DNA of 64,000 nucleotides from Raja brachyura (lineage: Eukaryota): assembly GCA_963514005.1 (NCBI GenBank), contig OY740797.1, positions 20,026,001-20,090,000 on the forward strand. Reading direction: 5' to 3'. The position numbers and the translations under genes were made by a program. Under the pieces are notes generated by a model, which was given only the letters and a program-made list of their open reading frames with translations, ran no database searches and had not been told where the DNA came from. Each line of letters starts with the position of its first letter. Position 1 is the stretch's first letter. Positions 26,170 through 48,916 of this stretch are shown here, piece after piece.

Positions 26170-29100
26170 TACTGCGGAGGGGAGAAAGAAGAGTGGAATG
26201 GGCTATTGTAATAGGGGATTCAATAGTAAGGGGAATAGTTAGGCGTTTCTGCGGCCGCAAACGAGACTCCAGGATGGTATGTTGCCTCCCTGGTGCAAGG
26301 GTCAGGGATGTCACTGAACGGCTGCAAAACATTCTGGAGGGGGAGGGTGAACAGCCAGCTGTTGTGGTGCACATTGGCATCAACGATATAGGTAAAAAAC
26401 GGGATGAGGTCCTACAAGGCAAATTTAGGGAACTAGGAGATAAACTTAAAAGTAGGACCTCAAAGGTAATAATCTCTGGACTCCTACCGGTGCTACGTGC
26501 TAGTCAGAGTAGAAATAGGAGGATATTGCAGATGAATACATGGCTTGAAAAATGGTGCAAGGGGGAGGGATTCAAATTACTTGGGCATTGGAACCAGTTC
26601 TGGGGGAGGTGGGACCAGTACAAACAGGATGGTCTGCACCTGGGCTTGAAGGGAACCAATGTCCTTGGGGGTATGTTTGCTAGTGCTGTCAGGAAGGATT
26701 TAAACTAATGTGGCACGGGAATGGGAGCATGAGCAGAGAGACAGAGGGATGTAAAATGAGGGTAGAAGAAATAGGTAACAAGGTGAAAAGTAAAAGTGGC
26801 AGGCAGAAAAATCCGGGGCAAAAATCAAAAAGGGCCACTTTTCAACATAATTGTATAAGTGGTAAGAGTGTTGTAAAAACAAGCCTGAAGGCTTTGTGTC
26901 TCAATGCAAGGAACATTCGTAATAAGGTGGATGAGTTGAATGTGCAGATAGTTATTAATGAATATGATATAGTTGGGATCACGGAGATGTGGCTCCAGGG
27001 TGACCAAGGCTGAGAGCTGAACATCCAGGGAGATTCAATATTCAGGTGGGATAGACAGAAAGGAAAAGGAGGTGGAGTAGCGTTGCTGGTTAAAGAGGAG
27101 ATTAACGCAATAGAAAGGAAGGACATTAGCTTGGAGGATGTGGAATCGATATGGGTAGAGCTGAGAAACACTAAGGGGCAGAAAACGCTAGTGGGAGTTG
27201 TGTACAGGCCACCTAACAGTAAAAGTGGAGTTGGGGATGGCATCAAACATGAAATTAGAAATGCGTGCAACAAGGGTAAAACAGTTATAATGGGTAGACT
27301 TCAATCTACATATAGATTGGGTGAATCAAATTGACAGGGGTGCTGAGGAAGAGGATTTCTTGGAATGTATGCGGGATAGTTTTCTAAACCAACAAGTAGA
27401 GGAACCAACGAGAGAGCAGGCTATTCTAGACTGGGTACTGAGTAATGAGGAAGGGTTAGTTAGCAGTCTTGTTGTGCGTGGCCCCTTGGGCAAGAGTGAC
27501 CATAATATGGTTGAGTTCTTCATTAGGATGGAGATTGACATTGTTAATTCAGAAACAAGGGTTCTGCACTTAAAGAAAGGTAACTTTGAGGGTATGAGAC
27601 GTGAATTGGCCAAGATAGACTGGCAAGTGATTCTTAAAGGGTTGACGGTGGATATGCAATGGAAGGCATTTAAAGACTGCATGGATGGACTACAACAATT
27701 GTTCATCCCAGTTTGGCAAAAGAATATATCAGGGAAGGTAGTGCATCCGTGGATAACAAGGGAAATCAGGGATAGTATCAAAACTAAAGATGAAGCATAC
27801 CAATTAGCCAGAGAAAGCAGCCTACCAGAGGGCTGGGAGAAATTCAGAGTCCAGCAGAGGAGGACAAAGTTCTTAATTAGGAAAGGGAAAATAGATTATG
27901 AAGGAAAACTGCCAGGGAACATAAAAACTGCCTGCAAAAGCTTTTATAGATATGTGAAGAGAAAAAGGTGAGTTAAAACAAATGTAGGTCCCTTGCAGTC
28001 AGAAACTGGTGAATTGAACATGGGAAACAAGGACATGGAAGACCAATTGAATAACTACTTTGGTTCTGTCTTCACAAAGGAAAACATAAATAATCTGCCA
28101 GAAATAGCAGGGAACCGGGGGTCAAATGAGATGGAGGAACTGAGTGAAATCCAGGTTAGCCGGGAACTGGTGTTAGGTAAATTGAATGGATTAAAGGCCG
28201 ATAACTCCCCAGGGCCAGATAGGCTGCACCCCAGAGTACTTAAGGAAGTAGCCTCAGAAATAGTGGATGCATTAGTGATAATCTTTCTAAACTCTTTAGA
28301 TTCTGGAGTAGTTCCTGAGGATTGGTGGGTAGCTAATGTAACCCCACTTTTTAAAAAGGGAGGGAGAGAGAAAATGGGGAATTACAGACCAATTAGTCTA
28401 ACATCAGTAGTGCTGAAAATACTAGAGTATATTAAAGATGGGATAGCAGCACATTTGGAAAGCGGTGAAATCATTGGACAAAGTCAACATGGGTTTATGA
28501 AAGGTAAATCATGTCTGACGAATCTTATAGAATTTTTTGAGGATGTAACTAGTAGAGTGGATAAGGGAGAACCTGTGGATGTGTTATATCTGGTCTTTCT
28601 GAAGGCTTTTGACAAGGTTCCACATAAGAGATTAGCATACAAACTTAAGGCACATGGTATTGGGGGTTCAGTATTGATGTGGATAGAGAACTGGCTGGCA
28701 AACAGGAAGCAAAGAGTAGGAGTAAACGGGTCGTTTTCACAATGGCAGGCAGTGACTAGTGGGGTACCGCAAGGCTCAGTGCTGGGACCCCAGCTATTTA
28801 CAATATATATTAATGATCTGGATGAGGGAATTGAAGGCAATATCTCCAAGTTTGCGGATGACACTAAGCTGGGAGGCAGTGTTAGCTGTGAGGAAGATGC
28901 TAGGAGACTGCAAGGTGACTTGGATAGGCTGGGTAAGTGGGCAAATGTTTGGCAGATGCATTTTAATGTGGATAAATGTGAGGTTATCCACTTTGGTGGC
29001 AAAAATAGGAAAACAGACTATTATCTAAATGGAGGCCAATTAGGAAAAGGGGAGATGCAGCGCGACCTGGGTGTCATGGTACACCAGTCATTGAAAGTAG

Positions 29101-29801
29101 GCATGCAGGTACAGCAGGCAGTGAAGAAAGCGAATGGTATGTTAGCTTTCAAAGCAAAAGGATTTGAGTATAGGAGCAGGGAGGTTCTACTTCAGTTGTA
29201 TAGGGTCTTGGTGAGACCACACCTGGAGTATTGCGTACAGTTCTGGTCTCCAAATCTGAGGAAAGACATTCATGCCATAGAGGGAGTACAGAGAAGGTTC
29301 ACCAGACTGATTCCTGGGATGGCAGGACTTCCATATGAAGAAAGACTGGATAGACTTGGCTTGTACTCGCTGGAATTTAGGAGATTGAGGGGGGATCTTA
29401 TAGATAATAATACAAAAATAGATAATATACAAAATTCTTAAGGGGTTGGACAGGCTAGATGCAGGAAAATTGTTCCCGATGTTGGGGAACTCCAGAACAA
29501 GGGGTCACAGTTTAAGGATAAGGGGGAAGTCTTTTAGGACCGAGATGAGAAGATCTTTTTTCACACAGAGAGTGGTGAGTCTGTGGAATTCTCTGCCGCA
29601 GAAGATAGTTGATGCCAGTTCATTGGCTATATTTAAGAGGGAGCTAGATGTGGCCCTTGTGGCTAAAGGCATCAGGGGGTATGGAGAGAAGGCAGGTGCA
29701 GGATACTGAGTTGGATGATCAGCCATGATCATATTGAATGGCGGTGCAGGCTTGAAGGGCCGAATGGCCTACTCCTGAACCTATTTTCTATGATTCTATG
29801 A
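26170..29801 (+). mobile_element. Long CR1-clade LINE: ORF1 SGNH esterase plus disrupted ORF2 (APE endonuclease-RT)
   Basis: ORF1 26193-26708 GDSIVRG/HIGINDI/DGLHL; ORF2 VYRPP, SDHN, GVPQGSVLGP, FADD; in-frame stops and a frameshift; (TTCTATGA)n tail; 5' boundary approximate. Confidence 0.93.
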
Positions 29802-30423: not shown

Positions 30424-32696
30424 ATTTATTTATTTATTTTTTTCTGTTAAATATTTTTTATTAGAAGTAAGTACATATCAAGATAAGGATATACATGTCA
30501 TATACATTCTTATTATTAATATTAACAATTGTTTCTAATTTGTACTTCTATGATTTTTTTCATTTTTAATATAGATAGGAAATAAAAGAGAGAAATAAAA
30601 TAAGGATAGATGAATGAAGTATTAAGCAGTTTGTACATCATTGGAGATATATCCATGGGTTATTATATGTAAATCTTCGTCTATTTCTTCGTTCAGGCAT
30701 CAGTCAGGTTCTCGCACCGAACCACCTTGACCCTTTAAATATTCAATAAATGGCGACCATATCCCTCTGAATTGATCCAACTTGCCCAGAAGGACAGATG
30801 AAGTGTCTCCGACATTTCAGTGACCCACAGTTTGATTGTGGGGGATGTAGGACCTTTCCAAAATTTCAATATTAGTTTTTTCCCAATTATTAAACTGTAA
30901 TCAATAAAAATTATTTGATTTATTGTTATTAATTGATCTATTTCTAATATTCCTAATATTATTAATTTTGAGTCAGGAAGCAAATTTGTATTAACAACAT
31001 TCGAAATTATCTTAAAACTTTCTGCCCAAAAGTTAGTAATTTTTATACAGTTTGTGAATGAGTGCGTTAGATTAGCTTCTAAGTGTTGACATTTATCGCA
31101 TATGGCTGGTATATTTGAAAAAAATCTATGTAATTTTGATTTTGAATAATGTAATCTATGTAGTACTTTAAATTGTATCAAGATGTGTCTAGCATTTAAC
31201 GAACAATGATGTATATTTTGTAAACTTTCATTCCATATTTCTGGTCTAATTGTTTGACCTAATTCGTTTTCCCATGATTGTCTATATGTTTCTGTCATTG
31301 GTACATCATTTTCTAATAAAATAGTATAAATATATTATATCAATGTTTCTGTATTTGGATGCTTATTTAGACATTCATCTAAAATTTCTGCCTTTCTATT
31401 TCTAATTTCCTGTGTGTTTGATTTTACGTAGTCTCTGATTTGTAAATATCTAAAATAATCTTTTGAATGTAATCCATAAATTTGTTGTAATTCTTGAAAT
31501 GAAAGAAAGGAGTTTTCCCTGTAAAGATCACCCATCCTAATAATTCCATAATTTTTCCATTGTGAAAAACCTTTACCCATCATTGAAGGTTTAAATGTGA
31601 CATTGTTTACAATGGAGAGAGCTAGTGGTATACATTCCAAATTTAATGTTTACTTAAGTTGTTTCCAAATACGTATCCCACTCTCTATTATAGGGTTTTC
31701 TTTATAGGTTTTCTTATCTAGTTTAGCATTAGCAAATAAAATTGTGCTAATGTCAAAAGGTGTACAATCTTCTTTTTCCATTTTTAACCAATTTGGTTGT
31801 TTATCTAATTCATCCAGCCAAAAATTCATATTTTTAATACTAACTGCCCAGTAATAAAACATAAAATTTGGTAATGCTAGACCTCTATTTATTTTTGATT
31901 TACATAAGTGTTTTTTATTTATTCTATGACTCTTATATTCCCAGATAAAATTGGTGATTATGGAGTCAACTTTTTTAAAAAAGTTTTTAGGAAGGTATAT
32001 TGGTATCAATTGGAAAAGATATAGTATTTGTGGAAGAAACATCATTTTTATTGCATTAATTCTACCTAACATTGAGATAGGTAATGTTTTCCAATATAAA
32101 ATATTCTTATTTAGTTTATTCAGTAATGGTGGGAAATTAGATTTAAATAAAGAATCATATTTTTGTTATGTGAATTCCAAGATATTTGATTTTTTCTTTT
32201 GCTATCTTAAAAGGATATTGTTGTAATGTATGTAGATTATTTACCGTTATTGGCATAAGTTCACTTTTATTCCAATTAATACTATATCCTGAAAACAAAC
32301 CAAATTCAGTTATTAAATTTAATAAATTTAAAATACTAATTTCCAGTTTTGTAATATAAAGTAATACATCATCAGCATATAAGGAAATTTTATTTTCAGT
32401 TTCTCTAGTTTGGTACCCATATATTTCAGGATGTAATCTCACGCTTTGAGCTAATGGTTCAATTGCAAGTGCGAACAATAGTGGGGATAAGGGACAACCT
32501 TGTCTACAGCCTCGGGATAAATTAAATTTAGTTGATAACATTTGATTTGTTAATATTCTAGCTGTTGGATTAGCATATAATAATTTAACCCATGATATAA
32601 ACTTCTCTCCCAACTTAAAAGTTTCCATGACCGAAAACAGGTAAGACCATTCCACCTGGTCAAAGGCCTTCTCCGCATCTAATGAAATAATTACTA
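30424..32696 (-). mobile_element. 5'-truncated L1-clade LINE
   Basis: RQGCPLSPLLF, LYADD, C-terminal CDKC zinc motif; TSD GGAGATCACTT at 30413-30423 and 32697-32707. Confidence 0.9.
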
Positions 32697-33654: not shown

Positions 33655-34032
33655 GGGAACAACAGGAAGTTGCTGAGCCACACAGCTCCCTGCCTTCACC
33701 CCTAACAATCCTGTCAACCCCACCCCCGCCACGCACATCTTGTGATAAAAACTCTGCTTCAATGTATTTTCGAATTCTTTGAATTAGCCTCAATTTCCAT
33801 TTCCAGCTACGAGCATGTTCTTCGCAGATCTCAACTGACGTTTGAGGGTACTGAAACCGCAAAGCTGCAAGTCTGACATTTAGTTTCGTTTGCACAATAT
33901 ACCCCGTCAAAAAAAAGTACCGTTATTCCCACCCACCATCCCCAAACCAACGCAGCTGCGTGGCTCAGCAACTTTCTGTTGTTCGACTCCGCGGTCTCTC
34001 GTGGCTCCTCAATTGCGAAGTCGGTACTCAGT
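33655..34032 (+). promoter_or_regulatory. Putative promoter/5'UTR of the IgSF gene (CpG-enriched; ETS and IRF-like motifs)
   Basis: CAGGAAGT at 33663, AGTTTCGTTTG at 33882-33892, TTTCCATTTCC near 33794; CpG visibly higher than in flanks. Confidence 0.4.
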
Positions 34033-34087
34033 ATGTATGGAAAAAATGAATTTAACCCCTTCCTCATTCTGGCCGTTACTTGCACAG
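34033..34087 (+). CDS. IgSF receptor exon 1, leader peptide
   Basis: ATG...acag|gtattc; MYGKNEFNPFLILAVTCT, 55 nt, phase 1, 240 bp upstream of the V exon. Confidence 0.7.
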
Positions 34088-37000
34088 GTATTCTTCAAAA
34101 ACACTTGCACATGAAGCAGCGAGTTCACTTAGCAAACTAATTATCATTTGTTTTGTCGCTCTTTTTAATTCATTGTGTCTGGTCTTTGGAAGTATCTGTT
34201 CATGTGTGATTGTACATCAAGCAAGTCGCTATTTCCATGGATTTCTTAAAATCAACTGAAAGATGAGGTTTGTTGTTGTCCTGAGCCTTTCGTAAATATA
34301 CACACTCTTTTCCGTTTATTTTTGCAGCATTCGCCGTGGTTACGGAGGTGCATCAAATTCCGGATAAAGTCGATGTATTAGCAAGGCAGAACGCGAGTTT
34401 GCAATGCTCCTTCGAGCTATTTAAAAACAAAAATAACATTAGGGTGTATTGGTGGAAAACTGGAGAACGGCAGTTTTTCAGAGAGGGAGATGATCCCAGG
34501 AAAATGTTCAAGGTGGAATCTAGAGCGAGTGCCGCGCTTAAGATTCGGAACGTGACAATGGGAGATGCCGGAATCTATTACTGCAGGGTGGAGGGTGAAT
34601 ACACTGGAAATGGAACAGGTGTAACCCTTGGAGTAAAAGGTGAGCGATCGTTCTCAGCAACATGCTGCCACTTTTGTTTATAACCCTGGCTCAGTGCAAT
34701 GTTAATCCGCTGCAGTGCGACAGGAGACTGGAAAGGAATGAAGGGAATAAAAAGTAGCTAAAATATATTTCCGTACAGTTTTCTTTTACGGTTCATACGC
34801 TACGCGTAAATAATGGTCGCTGCCGGGAAAACCCTTACAGCAGTGACAGGGGGTACAAGGGAATATCGGTACCGGGCATTGCGAACCACGGGAGACCATT
34901 ACATGTATAATAATGGAAGGGGGATATTCGTAAATGAACGCGCCGAATGCATATTTTGTATCATCCATCTGCGTCCCTTTATTATTCCGTGCGGCAACCG
35001 CGGGCATCGGCTGAACAGTTATTTCGAAATCATTTGCTGAACAAAATTGTACTTTTAAGGTATATGTCGCAATACGCTGTGCTCAGTAGCTGCAACATAT
35101 TGTCTGAAATGCATTACCATTTCCCCAGTATCCGTCTACTTCTATCCATTGAAATTGCTGACTTCCCACAAACTTGAATGTAGTTCATTAAGACGAAATA
35201 TTTGAATTTAATTATCAGTTATCGTTTACCCCTAAAGAGTACCGGTATGGGGTTTCAGTTCAGCTGGGCAGGGAAGAAGCAGACCGTTGATTGTATTTGT
35301 TAAAGAAGGAACTGCAGATGCTGGAGGATCGAGGGTACACAAAAGGCTGGAGAAACTCAGCGGGTGCAGCAGAATCGAAGGAGATAGGCGACGTTTCGGG
35401 TCGAGACCCTTCTTCAGACTGGTTAGGGATCAGGGAAACGAGAGATATAGACGGTGATGTGGAGAGATAAAGAACAAACAATTTTCAGGTGTTCCATCCA
35501 AGGGGAATTGCCACGTTTTCTGCAAACAGCTACTTAATGTTATATGTTATTATATGTTATATGTTAATAAACAATTCCCGCTACTTAATAAACAATTCGG
35601 TTCCCAATTGGTTGCGGCATTCCACAGGAAGGGAAATCAATTTCCAGGATACACTGGAAGAGCTGCCGAAAGGGTGGAAGGCAGAATCAACTGGGCTGAT
35701 GGAAAATGGCCATCTGAGTTATCGATGTATATTGCTACATCACGAGTGGTCTGTGTAATATTCCAATATGTTTCACGGGAGAGTAGCGCATTGATTCATG
35801 CTCAAACATGCTGGGGTAGAATTATATGTACGCATTAATTTTCCCCTCACAATGGACTGCCACCCGGGGAGCAAAACAATAATTCCTGGAAAGTCGGGTT
35901 GCAATGGGATAATTGCACTGAACTCTCTCCGGTTAATGCACTATATGTGCCGTCCGACGGTGCTGTCAATTTGGCAGAAATATATTGGGGAAACTTAATT
36001 GGTGCTAACCTCAGTGAATGTATATGGAGCTCTGCATTTAATTTGCTTATTTCCAAAACTGAAGTCAGTCGCTCGGATAGCATACACAATATTTGAACTT
36101 TAAATTCCCCTGCTCCACCAATCGGTTGCTTCAGAGATGCATTTCTCTTTAACCGATTGTGTCTGAAGTGGGGCAGTTTGGACTGTAAAATTTGCACAGT
36201 TCATTGACATATTTCGTTTGGTGGTGTCACGCGAAGTTAAATTACTAATCCAGCCCAGACTCATTCAGCGTTATGTTATTGCATACATTGGGAAACTAGG
36301 GACCGTGTCGAAAGAATTTCAAAGCCAAATTGCGAGATTCTGCGATTACAAATAGACCAATTCCTCCCCGTGTCGAAAGAATTTCAAAGCCAAATTGCGA
36401 GATTCTGCGAGTACAAATAGACCAATTCCTCCTTAAACAATGTTACAAAAATATGTTAATATGTGCTAGAGTTGCGCTGTTATTTCAGGGATCGCGAGTG
36501 CCCCGAAGGGGATGGATGATGAAGGCTACTCGCCCGCTCAAGTTACATACCTTAATTTTTATTTGATCAATCCCAAATCAACACATTCAATTATTCGGTT
36601 CTGGAGCATTAATCCCATTCCGATTGGAAATGTTAATAGTTAAATGGTAAACGTTGAAAGTACCAATTTCCCTTCCCGTCCACCAATAGCCCCTGTGTCT
36701 ATTTCAAACCTTGTTCTCCAGAGGAAAAATTGGACGAGTGAATGTGCTAACCAACGATTGACAAAACAAAAACTTAATTTCTGGACATCTAAATTTAAGC
36801 CCTGGATAGGCTCCTTTGGGCGTTATTTCTGGATATATAAATTATGTAATCTATGTTCTGTAATTTATGTTTCCAGAAAATCCTGGTTTATTTGTGCAGT
36901 TTACAAGTACTGACACGGGTCTGAAGTTAAATAGCCCTTATTAGAATTCCAAGGGACTCATCGGCTTTCATATAACCTACTTTCTTACCGTTTTTGTTTA

Positions 37001-40000
37001 TAAAAGCCAAATTGACTGACTTTGCAGGATAGTCAACTGACAGACTATCCTCCCAATGCAACATGAAGATATTATTTCATTTAAAGATGTTTCATAGTAT
37101 TGAGAATGCATGCATTATTTCTGTTGCTCTCAGTCAAAGCATTTGCCTATCCTTTAATAATATTTAATGTTCTCTGCTGTAGATTAAGTATCTATAATTG
37201 TATTGCTTTTCTTTAATTGTAGATACTTATCAGCATTTTTAACAGAGGATGCCGCAGAAAATTTGCACTACTGAAATGCATGATTTAAGCAGACCATTCT
37301 TAATGATTAAGAATGGGGTTTGGTGGGACAGAGGCATGGAGTTAGTGGGAAGGGGTGAGAACAAGTGGCAACAGTGTGAATATTTGGAACAAAATGTATC
37401 ATTCCTATAGGTAAAGACTGATTTCATATGAATGGTCCTGGCAGCCATTTTCCCACATTATCAATTATTATTTAATTATACAATGCAAATTATGTATTTT
37501 TAATATTCTAAAATGTTTCTTAATTTATTGGTAATTTGACTAGAAGTAAAGTAGGCCATGTTGGTCTTACCATTATTTATCTTCAATTGAGACAATCAAA
37601 ATTATTTTTTAAATTTTGTTACACTTTGCAGAATACAACTTTGTATGATAATGATGCTAAATTATTTTGGCAAGTAGAGTTTTATGACATATGCCCAAAT
37701 ACAGTAAGTACAATGAACAGCTTGCTTACAGTAGCATCAAAGGCAGGCAGACTAAGACAGCTAACAGACCATATTTTATGCATGAAATTAAACATAAATT
37801 ATGAAAGCCAGTGCAAAGAAAAACAGTGTGTAATACAAGAAATTTGTGCAAAACAGATTCTGAAGAAAGGCCTCGACCCGCAATGTCGCCCATTCCTTCT
37901 CTCTATAGATGCTGCCTCACCCGCTGAGTTACTCCAGCATTTTGTGTCTACCTTCGATTTTACCAGCATCTGCAGTTCTTTCTTACACAGATTTAAAATC
38001 AAGTCCATTGTTGTGCAAGAGGTGGTCCTTAGCGTTTCGCTGCTGAGGAAGGATTAAGATCATGAAGGCCATTTCAGGATTTGATGGTGTAGGAAAATAG
38101 CTGTTCCTGAACCTGGTGGTGTGGGAATTTAGTGTTCTGTACAAGAAGGGTTTCATCCCAAAACATCACCCATTCCTTATTTCCAGAGATGCTGCCTGTT
38201 CGCCAGTTACTCCAGCATTTTATGTCTGTCTTCAACTTAAACCACCATCTGCAGTTCTTTCCTACACATTAGTGTTCTGTACCCCCTGTCCGACAGTAGC
38301 AGAGAAAAGAGAGCATGAGCCATTTGGTGGAAATCACCGATGATAGATGCTGTCTTCATTGTGTAGATGCCTTCGATGGTGAACTGCATAAAGCTTATGC
38401 ACTGTACAAGCATCACAATTTATTTAAAAAATGTTGTTACATTTTGTAGAAACTAGCTTTTTATTGTAATGCTGCTGTTCTTTTGCCAAATACAAGCTTT
38501 TACTCTGACAAGCTTTGTTTTAATAGAGACATGAATATTACCTGACAATGGAATTTTTTAATGAATGAATGAATAAGTTTATTGGCAAAGTAAGTCCACA
38601 TGCAAGGAATTAGCCTTGGTGCTCCGCGCACAAGTGGCAACATGACATTCAGAGACAATTAAGGATGACACATATATTAACATATACAATAAACATTAAC
38701 AATAAAACATTATCGATTAAACATGTGAATTAAATAAAATACCACAGCCAAAGGAGGCTACAAATTTTTGGTTATTGAGTAGAGCTATTACTCGTGGGGG
38801 AAAAAGCTGTGTTTATGTCTCAGCTATTTGATTAGATAATGGTAGCTGCCTACTTTAACAATGTATTAATTTCACAAAATGATCACATTATATTCAAGTG
38901 CAAGACAGACATAATTGGAATTCAGACTACACAACCTATATTTGGGTTTACACCAGGGCATATCATTCTGTGCCAACCTAGCTCAGTACTTCATTCATTT
39001 CAGGCTGATTTATTCGAGTATGTACCTACACTTTTGTTGAATAAAACCATTAAGTGTGCAGGATAGCTTCTTCCTTTCCCATTTCCAGCAAATGCACCAG
39101 GTCATCTCCTTTTTGTTAATGTAGGTGTAAAATATAAGTAGACAAGCCCAGAGTTAATTTGGATTCATCATGATTGGGTTTTTAATTTTATATCCACATA
39201 GATCTTTACAGTGCAGAACAGAACACATTTACCCAATAAGTCCCTATTATAATATTTTTTGTACAAGATGGTGTCAGATTATTATACCAAAATGTTCTAT
39301 AGATCAGCGAATAGTCATTTTTAATAATGGAGGAATGAAATATTAGAAAATGGAATATTCTAACATATTCCAATGTATACCAGACAAATATATTGGTTCA
39401 CATCTTGTTTGTAATATTGAAATCAGAACATATGTTATTTTTAACATTTTCTACAGCTACCCCAGAACCAATGAAGATTTTGGAATCACAAGATGCGGAT
39501 GGTTCTCTGCTGTGCAAAACCTCTGGGTTCTATCCTGCAGACTACAGCTTGTCCTGGTATAGAGATGGTCAAAGAATTACGAATGGAGTAAAAACAAACC
39601 ATCAGCTTAATGCAGAGAGTCTAACTGAAGCCTCCAGCTATTTGCACGACACACAGCCAGCACAGGAAGGAACTATCTACGAATGTGAAGTGTCTCACTC
39701 CACACTCAAAGCTCCAGCTTCGGCCACTTATATTGTCAAACCTGCAGGTAGAAACATCCCTCTTTTGACAAAGCATTTAATTTGTATATGATTACGTTAT
39801 GTCTGGTTGAATTTTTTATTGTAGTAATACCTAGCAGGCGATGAGTTAAAATCTGAATTTTCAGAAACTGGGTTTGCATGGAGTGTTTTAAATTAATAAC
39901 AGTACACACCAGCTGCAGCTTCTAAGCTATGTGACATGACTTTACACTACTTCTTAAGGTCCACTTTTATTCAATATTTCCTTGGGTGTAATCCTTTGCT

Positions 40001-43000
40001 GATATGTTTTTGCACAATTGTTTTAACTGATGAGATATCTTAAGTTAAAAACAGAACGTATTGGAAAAACTCTGCAGCTCAGCCAGCATTTGTGGAAAGA
40101 TGCATAGAGTTAAGAATGATCTCCAACCTGAAAGGTTAATTCGCTTTCTGTTTCCATAGATGCTGCCTGTTCTGCAGAGTGCTACTGGCATTTTTGTATT
40201 TTTACTTCAAATTTCCAGCATCCATGGATTTATGATTATTTTCATGCCTCAGTTACTTACTCATTCTATGCAATATGCCACAGAATCATAGAATGATTAC
40301 ATCACACAAGGAGCCCTTTTAGCCCATCATGTGTGTGCTGATTTTCTACCAGAACAAATCACCAGTCTCCACACACCAGCACATTCTCTGCAGCATTGCA
40401 TTTTTTCTGCAGCTTATATTAATACAATTTATCTCTTTGATGATATGGCAGAACTTGCTTCCATTACATCCATAGGCAGTGCATTCTCTTCCCCCATTAT
40501 CTATGACAGCTCTTTGGTCTTTGTGTTTCACTATCTCTATACATTTTCTAGCCTTCATCGATTTATCTATTTCCATCAAATCTCCCCTCTGCCTTCTCTT
40601 CTCCAAAGAAAGGATGGGACAGCTTGTAAAGTTGCTGACGGTTGGCATGGACTTGGTGGGCTGAATGGCCAGTTTTTATGCTGTACTTTCAATCAGTCAA
40701 TCAAACAATCAAAACTGTTTTATTCATTCTAAACCTCTGTCATGATTATAGTGCTAGGAACCAATTTTGTTTAACATCTTCACGTCCTTCCGATAATGTG
40801 GTGACTGGAAATTAGTATAATATTTCCAGCTGAGGCCAAACAAGAATTTTATACAGATTCAGCATAAATTCCTTCTTTCATACTCTGTCTTTACTGATAA
40901 GGCACAGAATTGTGTTTGCCTTATTATCCACTTAACTTCCCCAACCACGTTTAATGATTTGTGCACACATCCTCTTTCTCCTGCACCCCACTTTGAAAAG
41001 TATAATTTTCTCTCCCTTGCCTCTCCTCATTCTTCACAGCAAATTGCATCATGCATATTTCTCCACATTAAATTTCATCTATCACCAGCTGGTTTATATC
41101 TGGCTGCAATATATCCCTATCTCCTTTGTTAATCACAATACACCAAGTTTTATGCCATCTTCAAATTTAGAAATTTAGGTTTGACCCCCTAATTCTAGGT
41201 TATCAAAATAGATTATAAAAAAAACAATGATCCTAAACTGACACCTAGAAGCACCACTATTAACAATTTAAATCTGAAAACCACTCATTACATTGCTCTT
41301 GTTATCTTTTACTTTGTCAACCATAATTTTTTTTAATTGTCTCCTTTTAAGGATTGTGCTTCAGCTTTGCTGATAAGTGTGGTATAGGGCATTTAACATA
41401 AAACATCGCATAGAACTGCATTACTTTCATTATCTGTTATCTCAAATTATTTAAATATGATATGCCCTTAACAAATCCATGCTTGCAACCCTTAAACATT
41501 TCAGCCCATTAGTGAATTAGTATTTGCCTCGTTCTGTTGCAAAAATATTAACAGACTCTGTTTCCATTCCCCTTAAAGGAAGAGTTTGCCAAAGCTTTCA
41601 GCCAGTGGAGAGAATGAAAAATTCCACTCGTCTGCCTTCAATGTGTGATCCTTTATTTTAAACAGTGACAACTAATCATTCTGTGAGGAAATATCCTTTC
41701 CATTTCCACCCTGTCAAGACTTCTCATGATTTTACATTTGTCAATCAGGACCCTTCTCACTCTGTTGTATCGCAGCAGACACAATCCTAGCCTGTAAAAC
41801 ATTTTCCTGTAAGGCACACATTAGTGCAGTAAAAGTTCTCTGAACTACTTCTGCCATATTAGTCTTTACTTAAACAAGTAGGCCATTACTGGACTAGATT
41901 CTCCAGATGATGTCTCATCAATGTCCGATGTAAATAAAGCAAGGTCTTCCTACTCTTGTATTCAATTCCCCCAGCAATAAAATATAATAAAAGAAAATGT
42001 TCTGACAGCTTTGTGAATTACTTGCTGTACCTGAATACTAGATGTTTGCAGTTCATGCACCCAGATTTCCTTGCATCTCAGAACAATGATGGCACCTCAT
42101 TATCTCATGGTAACTAAACCAGAAGACTGACAGAGTTTCAACCCGAAATGTCACCTATTCCATTTCTCCAGAGATGCTGCCTGACCCACTGAGTTACTCC
42201 AGCATTTTGTGTCTATCGCCAGAAGACTAAAATGCAGGGAACCACGGTGACTTGGTAGTTTGGATTCAGAACTGGCTAATCCATAGAAAGTGGGTTAGTG
42301 ATGGAAGGGCATAATTATGGTTGAATGTCTGTGACCAGTGGTGGTTTGCAGAGATCAGTGCAGGCACCTCTGTTCGTTTGTGATATATATAAATGACTGA
42401 GACGAAAATGTAGATGGGATGGTTAGCAAGTTTGCGGAATACACAAAAATGAGTGGAGTTGCAGAGAGTTAAGAAGACCATCAATTGATACAACCGGATT
42501 TAGACCTTTTGGGTGGACACATGGCAGATAGAGTTTAATTTGGGCAAATGTGAGCTGCTGCACATTTGGTGGTCAAATGTAAAAGGATGTAATGACAAAA
42601 CCCATAATAATATTGATGTGCAAAGGGATCTTGGTGTCCAAGTCCAAAGCTCCCCGAAAGTAGCAACAAAAGTGGATGGTATTAAAGAAGGTGCGTAGGA
42701 AGTAACCGCAGATGCTGGTTTAAATCAAAGATAGACACAAAAAGCTGGAATAACTCAGTGGGTCAGACAGCAGGTCAGAAAAAGGTCTGAAGAAAGGTCT
42801 CAACCCGAAATGTCAGCTGTTCCTTTTCTCCAGAGATGCTGTCTGACCCGCTGAGTTACTCCAGTTTTTTTGTGTCTATCTTTGTATTGAAGAAGTCATC
42901 TGGTTTGCTTGCCTTCAGAGGTCAAGCCATTCAGTATAAGAATTGGGAAGTCATTTTGCACCTGTATAAAGCTTTAGTTCTGCCACATTTGGAGTATTGT

Positions 43001-46000
43001 GTGCAATTCTGATTACCGCATTACAGGAAAGTAGTGCAGAATATGGAGAAGGTGAAAAGAGGTTGACCAGGATATTGCATAGATTAGTGAGTGTTAGCTA
43101 TAAGGAGAGGTTGCACAAACTTGGATTGTTTTCCCCGGAGCGTTGCAGGCTGAGAAGAGACCTGATAGAAGTTTACAATGTCATGAGAGGCAAAGATGGA
43201 GTAAACAATCAAAACGGACATAAATTGCTGGGGTAATTCAACGGGTCAGACAGCATCCCTGGCGAACATGGACAGCTTACCTTTCATATCGGTACCCTTC
43301 TTCAGAATCTTGTTCCCAGGATGGAAATGTCAAACACAAAGGAGCATTGGTTCAAGGTGAGAGTGGGAACATTTAAAGGAGAAGTTCGCTGCAAGATTTT
43401 TTGCATAGAAAGTAATGGGTGCCTAGAATGCGCTGCCAGTGCTGGTGGTTGAAGCTGTTTTGATAGTAACAGATCAGAGCCTTTTAGAGTGGCACATAAA
43501 TATGCAGGGACTGGAGGGTTATGGATCATATGCAGGCAGAAGGTTTTAGTTTAATTTGGTATCAAGCACAGCACAGACATCATGGTGCAATGGCCTATTC
43601 AGTGCTCCATGCCTATAAAATCTGTATTTTTCACATTATAACAGTTTAAAATTACTCCATTAGTTAACTCAAAGGTTTGAGCCCTACCAACCAGTAATGG
43701 GACAGAGATTCTCAAAACTCTTTATATTTCAGGTTGATGAGGTATTATATTTTAAATGAGCTTAATCACACTATTTGTTTCTGTTCGTTTGAGTATTGGT
43801 TTGAACATTAGTGCTGTTTTTGCACAGGGCGATTTTATTTATAATATAGTTTTATGCAGAGCCCTCAGAATGTCGTAACCTCCCAAATCATGTTTGTCTT
43901 GAGAGTACAAGTGATTTTATTTCTGTTTTATATCTGCTTTCTAGAAGTCAGTCCAATGACTACTTTGCCTTGGTGGATTCCTCTTTGTGGAGCACTGTTT
44001 CTACTGCTTCTACTGATTATTGTAGCAATAGTCAGTTATAAACTCTGCAAAGGTAAGGGACAATCTCTTTTCAATTATTTTAGTGTTGCATTGATTCAAT
44101 AATTATAACAAGCAAAAAGGTTATTGTAAATTAATCATTCATAACTGAAATAGCCAGACTTCAGATAAAAAAATTGTTATATGTTTTTTTCTGAGCTGTA
44201 CATTGTAACAGTAATAAGTATTGAAAATTGGACACTTCCACAATGGACATTGAGTTTTCAGCTTAGACAGAGTGCATTTTAAAGCGAAGTATTCAATGTA
44301 TTTACTGCACTCGGATATTTATTGCTGTTATGTGGAGAGAACTAAATTGATGAAGGTTGTTTTTTGTGGTGAAGGGGATTTTAGGAGGAAGTCAAAGCCA
44401 TCAGTTTGCCATTTTTGATTGAACATAGCTTGAAAGCTTTGGCCATGTCGAGCATTCATGTGTTATGGATGTCAATATTGAGATGCAGCTTCACTTACAA
44501 CTAGATTTTGTGGGATTTGCAGAACTTTCATCTGATTGATTTGTGTGAGACTGTTCAGCTCTGTTAATTACATGCTACATTTGTTGTTTAACACAATTGT
44601 AGCCCAACATTGCAGCTTCACAAAGCTAACATATCATCATTTCTGATTTTGCCTGGTACTGATCTTGGCATGTCCTTCTGCATTCCCCATTCAACCAGTG
44701 TTGAATGCGGCATGTAAGTAATGATAGTAGGATCTGTCTCCATAAAGTTCACGTTGTGTTCACTTCTACCAATGGTATCATGAACAGATGTATCTGCCAC
44801 AGGTGAATTGGCGAGAGTGAGGTCAAGTGTTTATATTGGTTGTGTTGGTTCACTCACTATCAGCCATGGACTTCCTTTCAAGAGTCAGCCAACACACGTG
44901 CTACAAGCCATGTTTGGGATGGAGAGTCCACAGCTATGGAATATTTTGTCTTTATTACTTCAAATTATAGTTCAACAAGAAGGATTGTTGGGAATTTAGG
45001 CAGCTGCAATCGCCAGACAAGTGGAGAGTATTCCATCGCACTCCTAACTTGTGCTTTGTAAGTGCTAAAAATAACTCGGATGTTAGGAGTGCAAGCAAGT
45101 TACCATAGGATATCCACCATCTGGCATGCTTTGTAGGCACATTGTTTATCTATGGTTCAGTTGAATTTATGCTCAAAGGTGACCTTCAGGATGTTGATGG
45201 TGGGGCATTTAAAAATGGTAATGGCATTGAATATCAGGGGTACATGACGCTAGGTATAAGCTAATAAAAGAAAGTGATTCTTTAAAATTGCTCCAGTTTT
45301 TCGAGTTCATTATGTTCTTTCCCACCTCCAATCTTCTGACATAAAAACGTATCAAAATTCTGAGTAATCTTGGGCCATAGCTCATGTTTCTTAATACAAT
45401 TAAGGCTACTTTCATCTTCACGGTAAGATTGGAGTATTAAATTGAAGAAAAGTTAGCTTTGATTTATTATTATTTGTTTAGGCCAGAAGTGTCTGATGGA
45501 GCTTCTGTTTTGTGCAGCAAAAGAAAATGTTTCGTGTTTTAAAGTGGAGATGTAATAACTTCCGGTTGGCCGATGAGCTGCTGAGCACCAAAATCAACTT
45601 GCACCTCAATGCTGCAATCCATTTTATATTTCCCAAATTAATTGTCTTGTTGTTTTCTGGCTTCATGAATGAAAGTGATCAAGTTATGAATAATTTCAGG
45701 TTTATCATATTCATCAGAATGTGGAATCTTGCAGAGAATTCCTGCCTGTTTAGAAAAGTACAGCCTTCCAAACAAACACAACATCTTTATACCAATTGAA
45801 ACCCTCTGACATTAATTGACTAATTATCACATTTTATTGTTCAGTTAGAACAATATACAAGAAGTACATTTATAGTCTCCTGGCCTACTTGCATATTAAA
45901 CATGACCACTTTACAATTGTTTCTTCCATTGAACTCATGAACGCAAGGATTAAAAACAAAGAAAACAATGAGGAAACAGAGGAAATCATGTGTTTCCTCT

Positions 46001-48916
46001 GCTCCTGTTTGTTATTTCCTCAAGACTAAACCATCGCTTTAACACAATCCTTGCTGTGAGTGTTTGTGACTGAGGAGGCCCTGCTAGCTTTTTACAATTT
46101 GTAATTTCACTGTGCTGCTAATCCCTTAATAGTTAAGCAAAATTCAAATAATATATTGCCAATCTATGTTAATACTGACGATTATATCAGAAATAATGCA
46201 GCCCACTGGTTTTCCACATTTGAACACCAGACAGACATTATTCCACGGGTGCACCTTTTATATATTTATAAGGTAGTGAATATTTTGATGAATATTTCTG
46301 GTTGATAGTCTGGCTCCTCCCCCAAACCTCCACCCTCATCCTGGTCTCTATCCTTTTTTAACTTTAATTTGGATATTGTTTGATTGTTTCATCATTATTG
46401 TCCTTATAAATCAACATATCTTGCCTTTTATCTTTAATTTTATCTATTGTCTTTCATCGTGTGAAATTCTCCATTATCTCTTGCTTGTCTGAAATACCTC
46501 CACCACTAACTTTGCTTTCAGGAAGCTTCATTTCCTCCTTACAGCCAAATATATATATTTTTTCACATTCTTAGTTTTAAAATAACACCTCAGACTTAAA
46601 TTCCGTTTTTTTTCTTTGTTCATTTCCAGTGATGTAGGTGTCACTGTAAAGGCCAACATCTCTTGCCCATCCTAATAAATAGAAAGGCCTCATAATCAGT
46701 GGTATATTGTTTGCCAGTAACTTTGTGCCACTCTTGCATATTTTCATTTCATAAAATCTGGAACAAATCTTGTTTAATCAGAATAACATAAAAATACGGT
46801 AAAATGTAAAACCATAAGTTGACCGGCTTTGACCAGCTTTCAGCGTGCTCTCCTTTCTCTGTAAGGGCATTGAGTATAGAAGTTGGGAAATTATGTTACA
46901 GTTTTACAAGACTTTGCTGAGGCCACACTTGGGGTATTGTGTTCAATTTCGGTAATCTTGGCAGAGGAAAGATGCCATTTTGCTGGAACAACTACAGAAA
47001 AGTACGTGACAATGTTGCTAAGACTGAAGGTTGAGCAGGCTAGGACTTTATTCCTTGAGGCGTAGGCGAGTTAGGGTGTACTTACACAGGTGTATAAAAT
47101 CGAAAGGAGAATAGAAAAAGTGAATGCACATTTTTTTGTTTTACAAGGTTTTCCCTAGAGGGCGTAGGTTTAAGGTGAGAGGCGTTAGATTGAATAGGAA
47201 CCTCAGTGACAACCTTCTCACACAAAAGGTTTGGGTATATGGAGTAAGAAGCCAGAGGAAGTGGCTGAGGCAGGAATATTAACAATATTTAACAAATATT
47301 TGGACAGGTAAATGGATGGGCAAGGGTTCGAAACGTTATTCCCTTATCTTTACATCTGTACACTGTGAATGCTTGATTGTTATCATGTTTTGTCTTTCCG
47401 CTGACTGGTTAGCATGCAACAAAAGCTTTTCACTGTACCTTGGTCCCTGTGACAATAAAGTAAACTTTTATTGTGTTATTGTTGTTCATAGAAACATGAG
47501 TGTAATGGGTACCCAAAGTTACAGGGACTACAATTTGTACTTTGTTGGTTGCAGAGAACTTCAGTTCTTTTGCAAGGTTAAAGTGCACTAACTTAAAGTT
47601 GATTAATTTAGCATTGTGAAAACTTGTTTTGTTTTCACCCTCCCCTCGTGACGTCCCTCTTTCCGATACAGAACGGTCTGTCCTCAACAAAGGCCTTACC
47701 TTTATACGTCTCCACCCCCACCTCAATGAGTTCCGGGCTCTCCATGACGTAGAGCTCTTTTACCATCGCCTCCACTTCCGGGCATTTTTCTATGGAAAGG
47801 TGTCCGCACTGACCAGTGATGACCGCTTCTCTTGTCTGCAACATCACCCTTCCTCTTGGACTCCCTCTGCTGGCTCTTTGTTTCTAACTGTAGGCACGAC
47901 ATCAACAGTCTTAACTTATCTACTGCCTTCAGACACTCCAACACCACACCCTCTGAATAAACAGCCCTAGGCTCACTTAGCAATAAACCCAACAAAACAG
48001 GGATGCTGCTTGACTTGCTGAGTTACTGCCGCAATTTGAGTCCTTTTGTATATTAACCACCATTCACAGTTCTTTGTTTCTACATAGTATTTAATGCATT
48101 TCTTCCAGATTCCCATTCCCATCAGTCATATAGCGTGCAATTCAAGGCCTTTTCACGAGGGGAAATTCTGACCTTGCCAATGACCTTGTATATGATCGCT
48201 GACAGTCTGTGACAGTAGCCAGACTTTTAAGGAGGTCCACACAAAAAGCTGGAGAAACTCAGCGGGTGCAGCAGCATCTAAGGAGCGAAGGAGATAGGCG
48301 ACGTTTCGGGTCGAGACCGCTCCTTAGATGCTGCTGCACCCGCTGAGTTTCTCCAGCTTTTTGTGTAACCCTCGATTCTCCAGCATCTGCAGTTCCTTCT
48401 TTAACACTTTTAAGGAGGTCGTTCCTGATCCCGCTATAACTAAATCTTATCACACATGCTGCTTTGTAAACAACAAGTACAAGACAGGGAATTTTATTCG
48501 ATCATCCCACTCTTTAGGCTTTGGACACAAGGACAATTTTAGTAATCCTAACATCATCTTGATGCTATGACTGAGCTTTGCTGGATTAACATTGCTTAGT
48601 ATTAGTAGTAGCTTGTCAGATTGTGAAGGTAAAGTTTCTTTGGGAATGTTTCTGCACTTTTTAATTGTCAGTGAAAACTTTGCACCTTATATTTCATGTT
48701 ATTTTACTTTCAGCACATAAAGGCAAGGTTCAAATGAAGACCTGCGTACGTTGCACTCAACCTATCGTGGCAAATCCTAATAATCTGAATGACGAAACAG
48801 TTCAAGGGAATACACAGATGGAACAGTGGAACCCAATCACAACAGCAGAAGTTACCGATGCCACGCCAAAAGTAAAAAAACACCGTAAAAGGAAAAATGA
48901 CCCAATGAATATTTGA
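34033..48916 (+). CDS. Non-rearranging IgSF type I membrane receptor (leader-VJ-C1-TM-cytoplasmic, 322 aa; NKp30-like V domain in a SIRP/tapasin/B7-H6-like V-C1 layout)
   Basis: Five exons with all phase-1 GT-AG introns: 34033-34087, 34328-34639, 39457-39747, 43945-44052, 48714-48916 (969 nt, open frame). Confidence 0.85.
34328..34639 (+). CDS. IgSF receptor exon 2, V-set (VJ-type) domain
   Basis: tttgcag|...aaag|gtgagc; SLQC, VYWWK, DAGIYYC, J-like GNGTGVTLGV. Confidence 0.93.
35300..35478 (-). mobile_element. Penelope-like terminal repeat with minimal hammerhead core
   Basis: Minus strand CTGAAGA-A-GGGTC-TC-GACCC-GAAAC-GTC at 35417-35390. Confidence 0.65.
36303..36432 (+). repeat. 65-bp tandem duplication (1 mismatch)
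   Basis: CCGTGTCGAAAGAATTTC...AATTCCTCC at 36303-36367 and 36368-36432. Confidence 0.9.
39457..39747 (+). CDS. IgSF receptor exon 3, C1-set domain
   Basis: ctacag|...gcag|gtaga; LLCKTSGFYPADYSLSWYRDG...YECEVSHSTL (C1 hallmarks FYP, W, YxCxVxH). Confidence 0.93.
42240..43610 (+). mobile_element. Old decayed CR1 RT/3' fragment with Penelope insertions
   Basis: WQIEFNLGKCELLH, RDLGVQV, SYKERLHKLGLFS; Penelope inserts at about 42695-42885 and 43215-43305. Confidence 0.7.
43945..44052 (+). CDS. IgSF receptor exon 4, transmembrane
   Basis: ttctag|...aaag|gtaagg; EVSPMTTLPWWIPLCGALFLLLLLIIVAIVSYKLCK. Confidence 0.88.
47620..48085 (+). mobile_element. Penelope-like element fragment (ORF N-terminus plus terminal piece)
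   Basis: LSDTERSVLNKGLTF...LNEFRA.HDVELF, typical of a PLE ORF start. Confidence 0.65.
48239..48366. repeat. Perfect 49-bp inverted repeat (Penelope terminal fold-back)
   Basis: Arms 48239-48287 and 48318-48366, 30-nt spacer. Confidence 0.9.
48714..48916 (+). CDS. IgSF receptor exon 5, cytoplasmic tail
   Basis: ttactttcag|; phase fits; AHKGKVQMKTCVRCTQP...KVKKHRKRKNDPMNI*. Confidence 0.7.

Follow-up and report, generated by a model that had tools for sequence, protein, structure and literature searches.

Gene structure and transcription

The 64,000-nucleotide stretch of Raja brachyura DNA analysed here (the window) carries an intact, transcribed, germline-joined gene whose product consists of a signal peptide, a V(J) domain, a single C1 domain, an uncharged transmembrane (TM) segment and a 67-residue tail. 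The upstream neighbour of this gene is OGFOD1, which is the sole identifiable neighbour within the window. OGFOD1 is not a marker of the MHC or of an antigen-receptor complex. The features of the gene are as follows.

33850..34032, + strand: 5' UTR (minimum extent; transcript contig X3 record 8 covers 33850-34084 with 0 mismatches)
34033..34087, + strand: exon 1, start ATG, most of the signal peptide (MYGKNEFNPFLILAVTCT) and 1 nt (split leader, phase 1)
34328..34639, + strand: exon 2, end of the leader and complete V(J) domain (Pfam V-set)
39457..39747, + strand: exon 3, C1-set constant domain (CKTSGFYP...WYRDG...YECEVSH)
43945..44052, + strand: exon 4, short stalk, conserved PWWIPLCG, uncharged TM helix and juxtamembrane Cys (YKLCK)
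48714..48916, + strand: exon 5, 67-residue cytoplasmic tail, then the TGA stop

An earlier note, made from the DNA letters, had described five in-frame phase-1 exons for leader, V, C1, TM and tail. All five were recovered at the positions that it gave, in phase 1 and with GT-AG borders, and their product is a type I membrane protein. The exon 1 leader differs by one residue from those of skate orthologues P0206 and P0207. An alternative start codon (ATG at 34046) was rejected, since its frame does not fit the phase-1 splice and the orthologues do not use it. A tblastn search of the window found no Ig exon beyond the V and C1 exons.

Spliced transcripts, proposed by the earlier note as a check, were found in small runs from four related species. 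Intron-less contigs from these runs join leader, V and C1 as predicted (34087 to 34328 and 34639 to 39457). The leader-V splice is present in contigs of three species, and the V-C1 splice likewise in three (organisms A, B and E). The point at which the contigs depart from the genome is precisely the C1 donor (39747). The best of them (X3 record 8) is 1560 nt in length, has 0 mismatches to the genome and runs 131 nt further upstream of 33850. Read depth is zero over non-repeat intron sequence, and the covered intron parts are high-copy repeats only. Use of the TM and tail exons is supported by the colinear 321-aa RefSeq orthologues of two skates and by the length of the transcript contigs, rather than by junction reads.

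V and C1 domains and absence of rearrangement

The V exon matches the Pfam V-set domain (E-value: 7e-11; 42.7 bits, cut-off 26). It encodes Cys26-Cys85, a WW motif, YYC and a J-like NGTGVTLGV carrying an N-glycosylation sequon. The J-like G strand (YYCRVEGEYTGNGTGVTLGV) sits within the V exon, and in an AlphaFold (AF2) model of the domain (pLDDT 94) it is interrupted at G95-T96-G97, like a J-type bulge. The closest solved V domain is that of NKp30 (3noi): its Foldseek TM-score is the top one (0.82 at 28% identity), and no other solved V domain exceeds it in identity (28-30%). IgNAR V was also matched. A V-only profile matches NKp30 over its full length (35 bits). Superposition of this V model on VL kappa gives a Z of 14.3 and an rmsd of ~2 A across 95-99 residues, J part included (VIA). 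The strand C-to-D stretch is short (Cys-Cys spacing of 59 residues), the model has no C'' strand and a WWK motif is found where antigen receptors have their WYRQ interface motif.

No RSS (heptamer, 12/23 spacer and nonamer) was found in or beside the V exon, and the transcript contig is colinear with the germline. The gene is thus expressed and non-rearranging. A weak RSS-like match on the minus strand, at 34696, differs from the consensus at 2 heptamer and 3 nonamer positions and is no better than chance.

The C1 exon matches the Pfam C1-set domain (E-value: 1.6e-12; 48 bits, cut-off 21), compared with 21 bits for a CD80-like C2-set. A phmmer search of the PDB with this exon matched Ig CH/CL and UrIg2. 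The AF2 model of the domain (pLDDT 87) is closest in fold to MHC class II beta2 domains (TM-score ~0.8). The ESM Atlas returned generic V/C1 clusters only. As modelled, the V fold resembles those of NKp30, IgNAR V and VL, and the C1 fold resembles those of MHC class II beta2 and Ig constant domains. The V domain with an in-exon J-like strand, the C1-set assignment and the lack of an RSS had all been claimed in the earlier note, and each is borne out by these results.

An orthologue group within a cartilaginous-fish family

Judged by sequence, the window gene is the skate-lineage member of an orthologue group that has one copy per species sampled. The search for orthologues in sharks, rays and chimaera that had been suggested at the outset found members in all of these; the group spans skates, rays, sawfish, sharks and chimaera (Holocephali, sharks and batoids). 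Its members include proteins of Amblyraja (XP_032891954.1), Pristis (XP_051884092.1), Hemiscyllium (XP_060694223.1) and Callorhinchus (XP_007902833.1). They are 321-327 aa in length with a single C1 domain. Three natural full-length orthologues (P0002, P0151 and P0206) were used as proxies for the whole protein, and the window exons were searched singly. In the V tree, the window gene belongs to a clade of 14 rows, each from a different species (100/99*), the branching of which tracks species relationships. In the C1 tree, it falls in a 13-row set (97/89*). Compared with the 321-aa skate orthologues, the window gene is 77% identical in V, 86% in C1 and 88% in the tail, with a near-identical TM. 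Differences from close species are mostly nonsynonymous, with the reading frame intact, and among skates V is the least conserved domain. Low V conservation is usual in ligand-binding immune receptor domains.

The group belongs to a large V-C1 receptor family that is confined to cartilaginous fish, as far as relatives are detectable. All relatives detected in an exhaustive HMMER scan of 1.84 billion representatives and in a profile search are from cartilaginous fish, and no bony-vertebrate V-C1 protein is among the 150 best of these representatives. The non-chondrichthyan matches that were looked up (pIgR-like, otk-like, a gar SIRP-beta-2-like protein and a pufferfish TCR V protein) have domain scores of 20-50 bits, compared with 90-147 bits within the family. 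A V-only profile search, limited by a word filter and a length window, found cartilaginous-fish proteins only and no NCR3 of other vertebrates, a blank that carries no weight under these limits.

A survey of TM segments and tails showed that the paralogues come in two forms, one with an ITIM tail and one with a short tail and a charged TM residue (Arg or Lys). From their sequences, they look like paired inhibitory and activating innate receptors, in the manner of SIRP or PRARP. The orthologue group differs from these paralogues in its uncharged TM, its lack of a tyrosine motif and its tail with invariant C-x-R-C and KKHRKR. It is also conserved and present in one copy per species, whereas the paralogues are multi-copy and variable.

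RefSeq auto-names conflict even within the orthologue group (SIRP-like, NCR3LG1-like, Ig lambda-like, CD276 and BTNL10), and the database names of the family as a whole (SIRP-like, Ig lambda-like, tapasin-like and MHC II beta-like) are misleading. No described V-C1, SIRP-like family of cartilaginous fish was found in the literature. The gene has been annotated automatically and has not been studied before. The earlier note had called it an uncharacterised, non-rearranging, TCR-chain-shaped receptor. This description holds for its architecture, expression and lack of rearrangement; it fails as a claim of lone novelty, as the gene is a member of a large auto-annotated family. Curation and placement of the family would benefit the annotation of immune genes in sharks and rays and add a lineage to V and C1 phylogenies.

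The TM and tail set the orthologue group apart from its paralogues. R, K, D and E are absent from the TM core of every member of the group. The tail is tyrosine-free, with KTCVRCTQP and a C-terminal KVKKHRKRK; it is 88% identical to that of Amblyraja (P0206) and 51% identical to that of Narcine (P0164). C-x-R-C and KKHRKR are found in all full-length members, and the group markers (a PWWIxxC(G/I) TM start, C-x-R-C and the KKHRKR tail) are all present in the window gene.

The proposed model for the protein is as follows. The NKp30/VL-like V domain would bind a ligand at the cell surface, presumably in an immune role, with the C1 domain serving as the membrane-proximal module. The cysteine and basic motifs of the tail would carry signalling or anchoring. 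Because the protein has no ITIM, ITAM or charged TM, such signalling or anchoring would have to use these invariant motifs. By analogy, the juxtamembrane Cys is probably palmitoylated, and the C-x-R-C-(S/T)-x-P of the tail could form a metal or kinase-docking clasp. The conserved Lys-Thr-Cys...Cys-x-x-Pro cluster in this tyrosine-free tail resembles the cytoplasmic zinc-clasp motif of CD4 and CD8-alpha, but its spacing is C-x-x-C and not C-x-C. A bolder version of this model is a long shot: the orthologue group would be an ancient invariant TCR-chain-shaped subunit, kept for ~400 million years, that engages a Src-family kinase through a Cys-x-x-Cys metal clasp, perhaps as a pre-RAG side branch surviving only in cartilaginous fish. 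If this were true, a signalling solution of the CD4/CD8 style would have been placed on an antigen-receptor-like ectodomain. Complex prediction for an orthologue ectodomain homodimer gave a score of 0.00, which is evidence neither way. The tyrosine-free Cys/basic tail poses a concrete signalling question.

Known receptors and alternative readings

As a whole, the locus is best explained (with a probability of roughly 0.65) as the gene for a non-rearranging V-C1 type I membrane glycoprotein, the skate copy of a chondrichthyan orthologue group. No orthology to a characterised gene was found in the sequence comparisons. The earlier note had named clear one-to-one orthology to a characterised gene as evidence against its reading. 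Such orthology to NCR3, NCR3LG1, SIRP or TAPBPL was not seen; the auto-names conflict and the detectable relatives are all from cartilaginous fish.

Several known systems share parts of this architecture. The V domain of NKp30 likewise does not rearrange, and its J-like G strand, already joined, carries a GNGT sequon; the earlier note had pointed out the likeness of this strand. However, NKp30 has no C1 domain, and the window gene has a C1 spliced directly to V, an uncharged TM and a different tail. Mammalian NKp30 uses a TM Arg for pairing with an ITAM adaptor. Shark NCR3 is reportedly MHC-linked, and the positions of the window gene and of the white-shark family given below bear on this only indirectly. 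SIRP resembles the window gene in having V followed by C1-set, and its ITIM and charged-TM forms are paralleled in the family of the window gene. The SIRP-alpha V-C1 unit aligns in a single stretch with the family profile (E-value: 4e-28), and SIRP is the commonest auto-name among the paralogues. SIRP differs in having two C1 domains where the window gene has one. SIRP-alpha has ITIMs and SIRP-beta a charged TM with a short tail, whereas the window gene and its orthologue group have neither. Because the auto-names are inconsistent and every near relative is from cartilaginous fish, no SIRP orthology is evident.

UrIg and UrIg2, two elasmobranch genes, likewise do not rearrange; each has its VJ in one exon, a split leader and C1-type domains, and UrIg2 (9dmx) is among the best PDB matches of both the C1 domain and the family profile. 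UrIg is a secreted protein with three C domains, while UrIg2 has nine or more C domains and a TM and lies within the Ig/TCR complex (PMC12227049). The plan that defines the two is a homodimer with at least three C1-type domains behind VJ. The window gene differs from both in having one C1, a paired-receptor-like family and OGFOD1 alongside. TCR and Ig light chains share the order of leader, V+J and one C1, followed in TCR by a TM. The window gene has neither an RSS nor separate V and J, its transcript being colinear with the germline, and its TM has none of the charged residues through which TCR chains assemble with CD3. Overall, its tie to Ig/TCR appears no closer than its tie to NKp30, SIRP or UrIg2. 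Non-rearranging VJ-C1 genes (UrIg, UrIg2, NKp30 and PRARP) underpin ideas on the origin of antibodies and TCR. To these the present locus contributes a clean, expressed case that has a single C1 and a membrane anchor and is conserved in all cartilaginous fishes.

A reading that overlaps with the orthologue-group explanation is that the family, including the window gene, is the cartilaginous-fish counterpart of PRARP. PRARP genes are non-rearranging VJ-C1-TM genes with an ITIM from chicken, reptiles, amphibians and bony fish. PRARP is not known to have been reported from cartilaginous fish. Fu et al. (2019) reportedly describe a V-C1 structure with an ITIM for non-avian PRARP, which would fit the ITIM paralogues of the window gene, and reportedly place PRARP orthologues from bony fish to birds with none in cartilaginous fish, which argues against the reading. 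By description, PRARP shares with the window gene a non-rearranging VJ, a C1 (in non-avian forms) and a TM, but the ITIM is matched in the paralogues and is missing from the window gene itself. The lack of a bony-vertebrate V-C1 protein among the 150 best representatives, with other matches scoring far lower, also speaks against it. Two papers cite PRARP as a joined-VJ gene family (PMC10751288; PMC11599192), in keeping with the proposed relationship. A strongly diverged bony-vertebrate counterpart such as PRARP may exist, and this identity for the family is possible, though the odds are against it.

Alternatively, the window protein could be a surface ligand of the B7, B7-H6 or butyrophilin type rather than a receptor. 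Such a role would suit the NCR3LG1-like, CD276 homolog and BTNL10 auto-names of the orthologues, the tail without ITIM or ITAM, the uncharged TM and the one conserved copy per species sampled, set against multi-copy, variable paralogues. It is unlikely, however, as the V domain has a receptor-type G strand with GNGT and its closest solved single V domains are NKp30, IgNAR V and VL. The 60 best PDB matches of the family profile do not include B7-H6; SIRP-alpha, in contrast, aligns through both V and C1, and CD276 is a weak match of the V profile only. The nearest relatives of the window gene are also clear ITIM or charged-TM receptors.

It is quite doubtful that the window gene is a present-day relative of the pre-RAG ancestor of antigen receptors, pairing V-V and C1-C1 with itself or a paralogue. 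VJ, a single C1 and a TM with a split leader do make up the architecture of a TCR chain, the V model superposes on VL including its J part, and both the C1 domain and the family profile have good scores against UrIg2 and Ig chains. These scores show no specific Ig/TCR affinity over NKp30, SIRP or UrIg2, however, and the short C-D stretch, the missing C'' strand and the replacement of WYRQ by WWK count against this reading. The genomic position is also contrary. The window gene adjoins OGFOD1, and in white shark, where chromosome 19 carries the MHC (PMC10751288), the family is found on a 193.5-Mb sequence. A search of the supplement of PMC10751288 found neither OGFOD1 nor the orthologue accessions. 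No role in the ancestry of antigen receptors is supported.

The remaining reading, that of a pseudogene or a chance array of Ig-like exons, has a negligible probability and is refuted by the spliced contigs and the V tree: the moderately high nonsynonymous share between close species (17 N : 7 S) is all that favours it, and it is opposed by open reading frames that these differences leave intact, canonical splice sites, spliced contigs in four species and the retention of all five exons across cartilaginous fishes.

Exon structure and splicing of the V-C1 receptor gene

The receptor gene at 34033-48916 has five plus-strand exons, all of phase 1 and with GT-AG borders as read from the sequence:

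34033-34087, +, leader exon, encoding MYGKNEFNPFLILAVTCT plus one base
34328-34639, +, V exon (Pfam V-set)
39457-39747, +, C1 exon (Pfam C1-set)
43945-44052, +, stalk and transmembrane (TM) exon, 108 nt
48714-48916, +, tail exon, 203 nt, with TGA at its end

The exons were searched singly, with natural full-length orthologues as proxies for the complete protein. The V exon is most similar to Pfam V-set (E-value: 7e-11), with I-set second. The C1 exon matches C1-set (E-value: 1.6e-12) with 48 bits, versus 21 bits for CD80-like C2-set. A tblastn search of each exon against the window found no second copy of any of them.

The V exon is present in near-identical form in sequencing runs from five organisms. 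Four small runs, one per organism, were mapped onto 33850-39800 (leader through C1 region), where depth is limited to the exons and two high-copy repeats. Single contigs span 33850-34084, 34325-34637 and 39455-39747; less two to three shared bases each, their joints are the GT-AG junctions 34087/34328 and 34639/39457. The top contig (1560 nt, from the run X3) has no mismatches and diverges from the genome precisely at the C1 donor site, continuing for 588 nt, which leaves room for a 3' UTR in addition to the TM (108 nt) and the tail (203 nt). The contig picture is the same in organisms B, C and E. As the contigs are joined at the predicted sites, the gene is transcribed, splicing of its leader, V and C1 exons follows the prediction, and the V(J) is encoded in the germline. 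The five-exon V-C1-TM-tail gene described in the earlier note is real; contigs cross its leader-V and V-C1 junctions within 33850-39800, and use of the TM and tail exons is predicted from colinear orthologues.

The earlier note also described a non-rearranging V domain with an in-exon J-like G strand, and this description holds. The V exon encodes a complete domain, including the J-like strand ...YYCRVEGEYTGNGTGVTLGVK. AlphaFold (pLDDT 94) models the G strand as broken at Gly95-Thr96-Gly97, the position expected for a J-type bulge; in the literature the J consensus is given as FGxGTx(L/V)xV (PMC11599192). No recombination signal (RSS) is found within or beside the V exon. Because the C-to-D stretch is short, with a Cys-Cys distance of 59 residues, and the C'' strand is absent from the model, the domain is a compact V like that of IgNAR or NKp30, not a textbook VH or VL.

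A cartilaginous-fish family with three tail designs

When the V exon was searched exhaustively with HMMER against 1.84 billion representative proteins, all true single-domain relatives among the 150 best matches were from cartilaginous fish, and the remaining matches were multi-Ig proteins summing weak matches. Searches with a full-length orthologue (11 proteins) and with a family profile (49 proteins) likewise returned cartilaginous fish throughout. The RefSeq names of these relatives are discordant (SIRP-alpha-like, SIRP-beta-like, NCR3-like, NCR3LG1-like, Ig lambda-1-like, tapasin-related-like, CD276 homolog, BTNL10 and MHC class II beta-like), a pattern often seen in families in which no orthologue has been characterised.

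Maximum-likelihood trees were built separately for the V and C1 exons. In the V tree, the gene lies inside a 14-row clade (support 100/99) with one row per species, branching approximately in species order (chimaera, sharks, batoids). In the C1 tree, it lies inside the corresponding 13-row set (support 97/89). The nearest annotated orthologues, from Amblyraja radiata (XP_032891954.1) and Leucoraja erinacea (XP_055504648.1), are 321 aa each and colinear with all five exons. Identity to these skate proteins is 77% for V, 86% for C1 and 88% for the tail, with the leader and TM almost identical, which marks the window as DNA of a skate-like batoid; V changes fastest of all parts of the gene in this comparison. 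In the reads, differences from close species are 17 nonsynonymous and 7 synonymous, and the reading frame is undamaged. All seven V-exon differences from the two closest species are nonsynonymous. These comparisons hint at diversifying selection on the putative ligand-binding V domain.

The region following C1 was surveyed in all fetched family members. One design has an uncharged TM and a long tail with ITIMs (LTYAAL, VSYAAL, SVYAQL and so on), and a second has an Arg or Lys in the TM and a tail of 5-34 residues. Together these two designs are the hallmark of paired innate receptors, one inhibitory and one activating, such as SIRP-alpha and SIRP-beta. The third design is that of the orthologue group: an uncharged TM starting PWWI(Y/P)(L/I)C, Cys-rich juxtamembrane residues and a tail of approximately 73 residues without a tyrosine motif, bearing an invariant C-(V/S)-R-C-(S/T)-x-P and a C-terminal K-x-K-K-H-R-K-R. 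Within each species, orthologue and paralogues lie on one chromosome-sized sequence. Among named molecules, the family's most plausible relative, judged by description, would be PRARP, reportedly a VJ-C1-TM-ITIM protein of bony vertebrates.

Domain duplications occur in some paralogue models, as V-C1-C1 in P0043 (Amblyraja) and V-V-C1 in P0168 (Scyliorhinus torazame); these are either real exon duplications or models fusing neighbouring genes. The P0202 protein cluster (S. torazame and S. canicula) is a V-only membrane protein with ...GKPKQTGNGTLVTV and without C1, one member of which is called NCR3 in UniRef. The P0202-type gene is on a 229 Mb chromosome-sized sequence and the V-C1 family on a different one of 266 Mb. 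P0202 is probably the true catshark NKp30-type gene.

Relationship to antigen receptors and proposed function

The best PDB matches to the family profile are Ig chains, UrIg2 (E-value: 9e-35) and SIRP-alpha, whose V and first C1 align as one stretch (4e-28). NKp30 matches a V-only profile over its full length with 35 bits, level with IgNAR V and light-chain V. Foldseek places IgNAR V and NKp30 at the top for the V model, NKp30 (3noi) having the best TM-score (0.82) and identity (28-30%). With VIA-align, many kappa VL domains tie at Z 14.3 (rmsd approximately 2 A over 95-99 of 103 residues, including the J part). The C1 model (pLDDT 87) is best matched by MHC class II beta2 domains (TM approximately 0.8). 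This spread of matches indicates ordinary good V(J) and C1 domains that are not specially close to Ig/TCR. The reading of the gene as an antigen-receptor ancestor is an unlikely one and gains no specific support. UrIg (VJ and three C domains, secreted) and UrIg2 (VJ and nine or more C domains with a TM, within the Ig/TCR complex) (PMC12227049) are different genes.

The gene product is a membrane-anchored V-C1 protein from germline DNA. Its V domain likely binds a ligand at the cell surface. As the protein has no ITIM/ITAM and no charged TM, the signalling route presumed for the paralogues would be closed to it. The invariant tail cysteines and basic C-terminal end are likely functional elements, and the membrane-adjacent cysteines may be palmitoylated. 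The tail Cys-x-x-Cys cluster is loosely reminiscent of the CD4/CD8 clasp, in which the spacing is C-x-C. The protein could equally be a ligand-type molecule. The gene is confirmed as real, and is uncharacterised but not unknown, since its orthologues already have automatic gene models. The most fitting place for it is as an unnamed addition to a known class, the non-rearranging VJ-C1 receptors of the IgSF, within a paired-receptor-like family that the searches found in cartilaginous fish alone, and with a distinctive tail.

Neighbouring gene and mobile elements

The other features of the window are as follows:

12289-13017, reverse-transcriptase fragment
15578-20216, +, OGFOD1 (2-oxoglutarate/Fe oxygenase) exons, 3' part, upstream of the receptor gene on the same strand
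26193-29441, +, LINE; ORF1 of GDSL-esterase type at 26193-26708, reverse-transcriptase ORF at 27993-29441
32155-32655, -, reverse-transcriptase fragment
56103-57395, -, reverse-transcriptase fragment
57676-61895, -, pol region of an LTR retrotransposon, within GC-rich sequence (56% GC)

OGFOD1, with its Ofd1_CTDD domain divided over ORFs 15578-15871 and 19893-20216 and an acidic exon at 17918-18340, is the sole recognisable, conserved non-immune neighbour inside the window and may be useful for tracing synteny of the receptor gene. In the LTR pol, RVT_1, RNase H and an integrase zinc-binding domain share an open frame of 1087 aa; the integrase core follows in a frame of its own, so pol is apparently interrupted by one or more frame breaks.

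Two very high-copy repeat pieces (35243-35640 and 37830-38800) lie in intron 2 of the receptor gene; their summed contig depth is at least 10^5 in each of the four runs. Contigs link them on opposite strands (35390 to 37907), and the pair looks like inverted copies of an abundant, transcribed SINE-like element.
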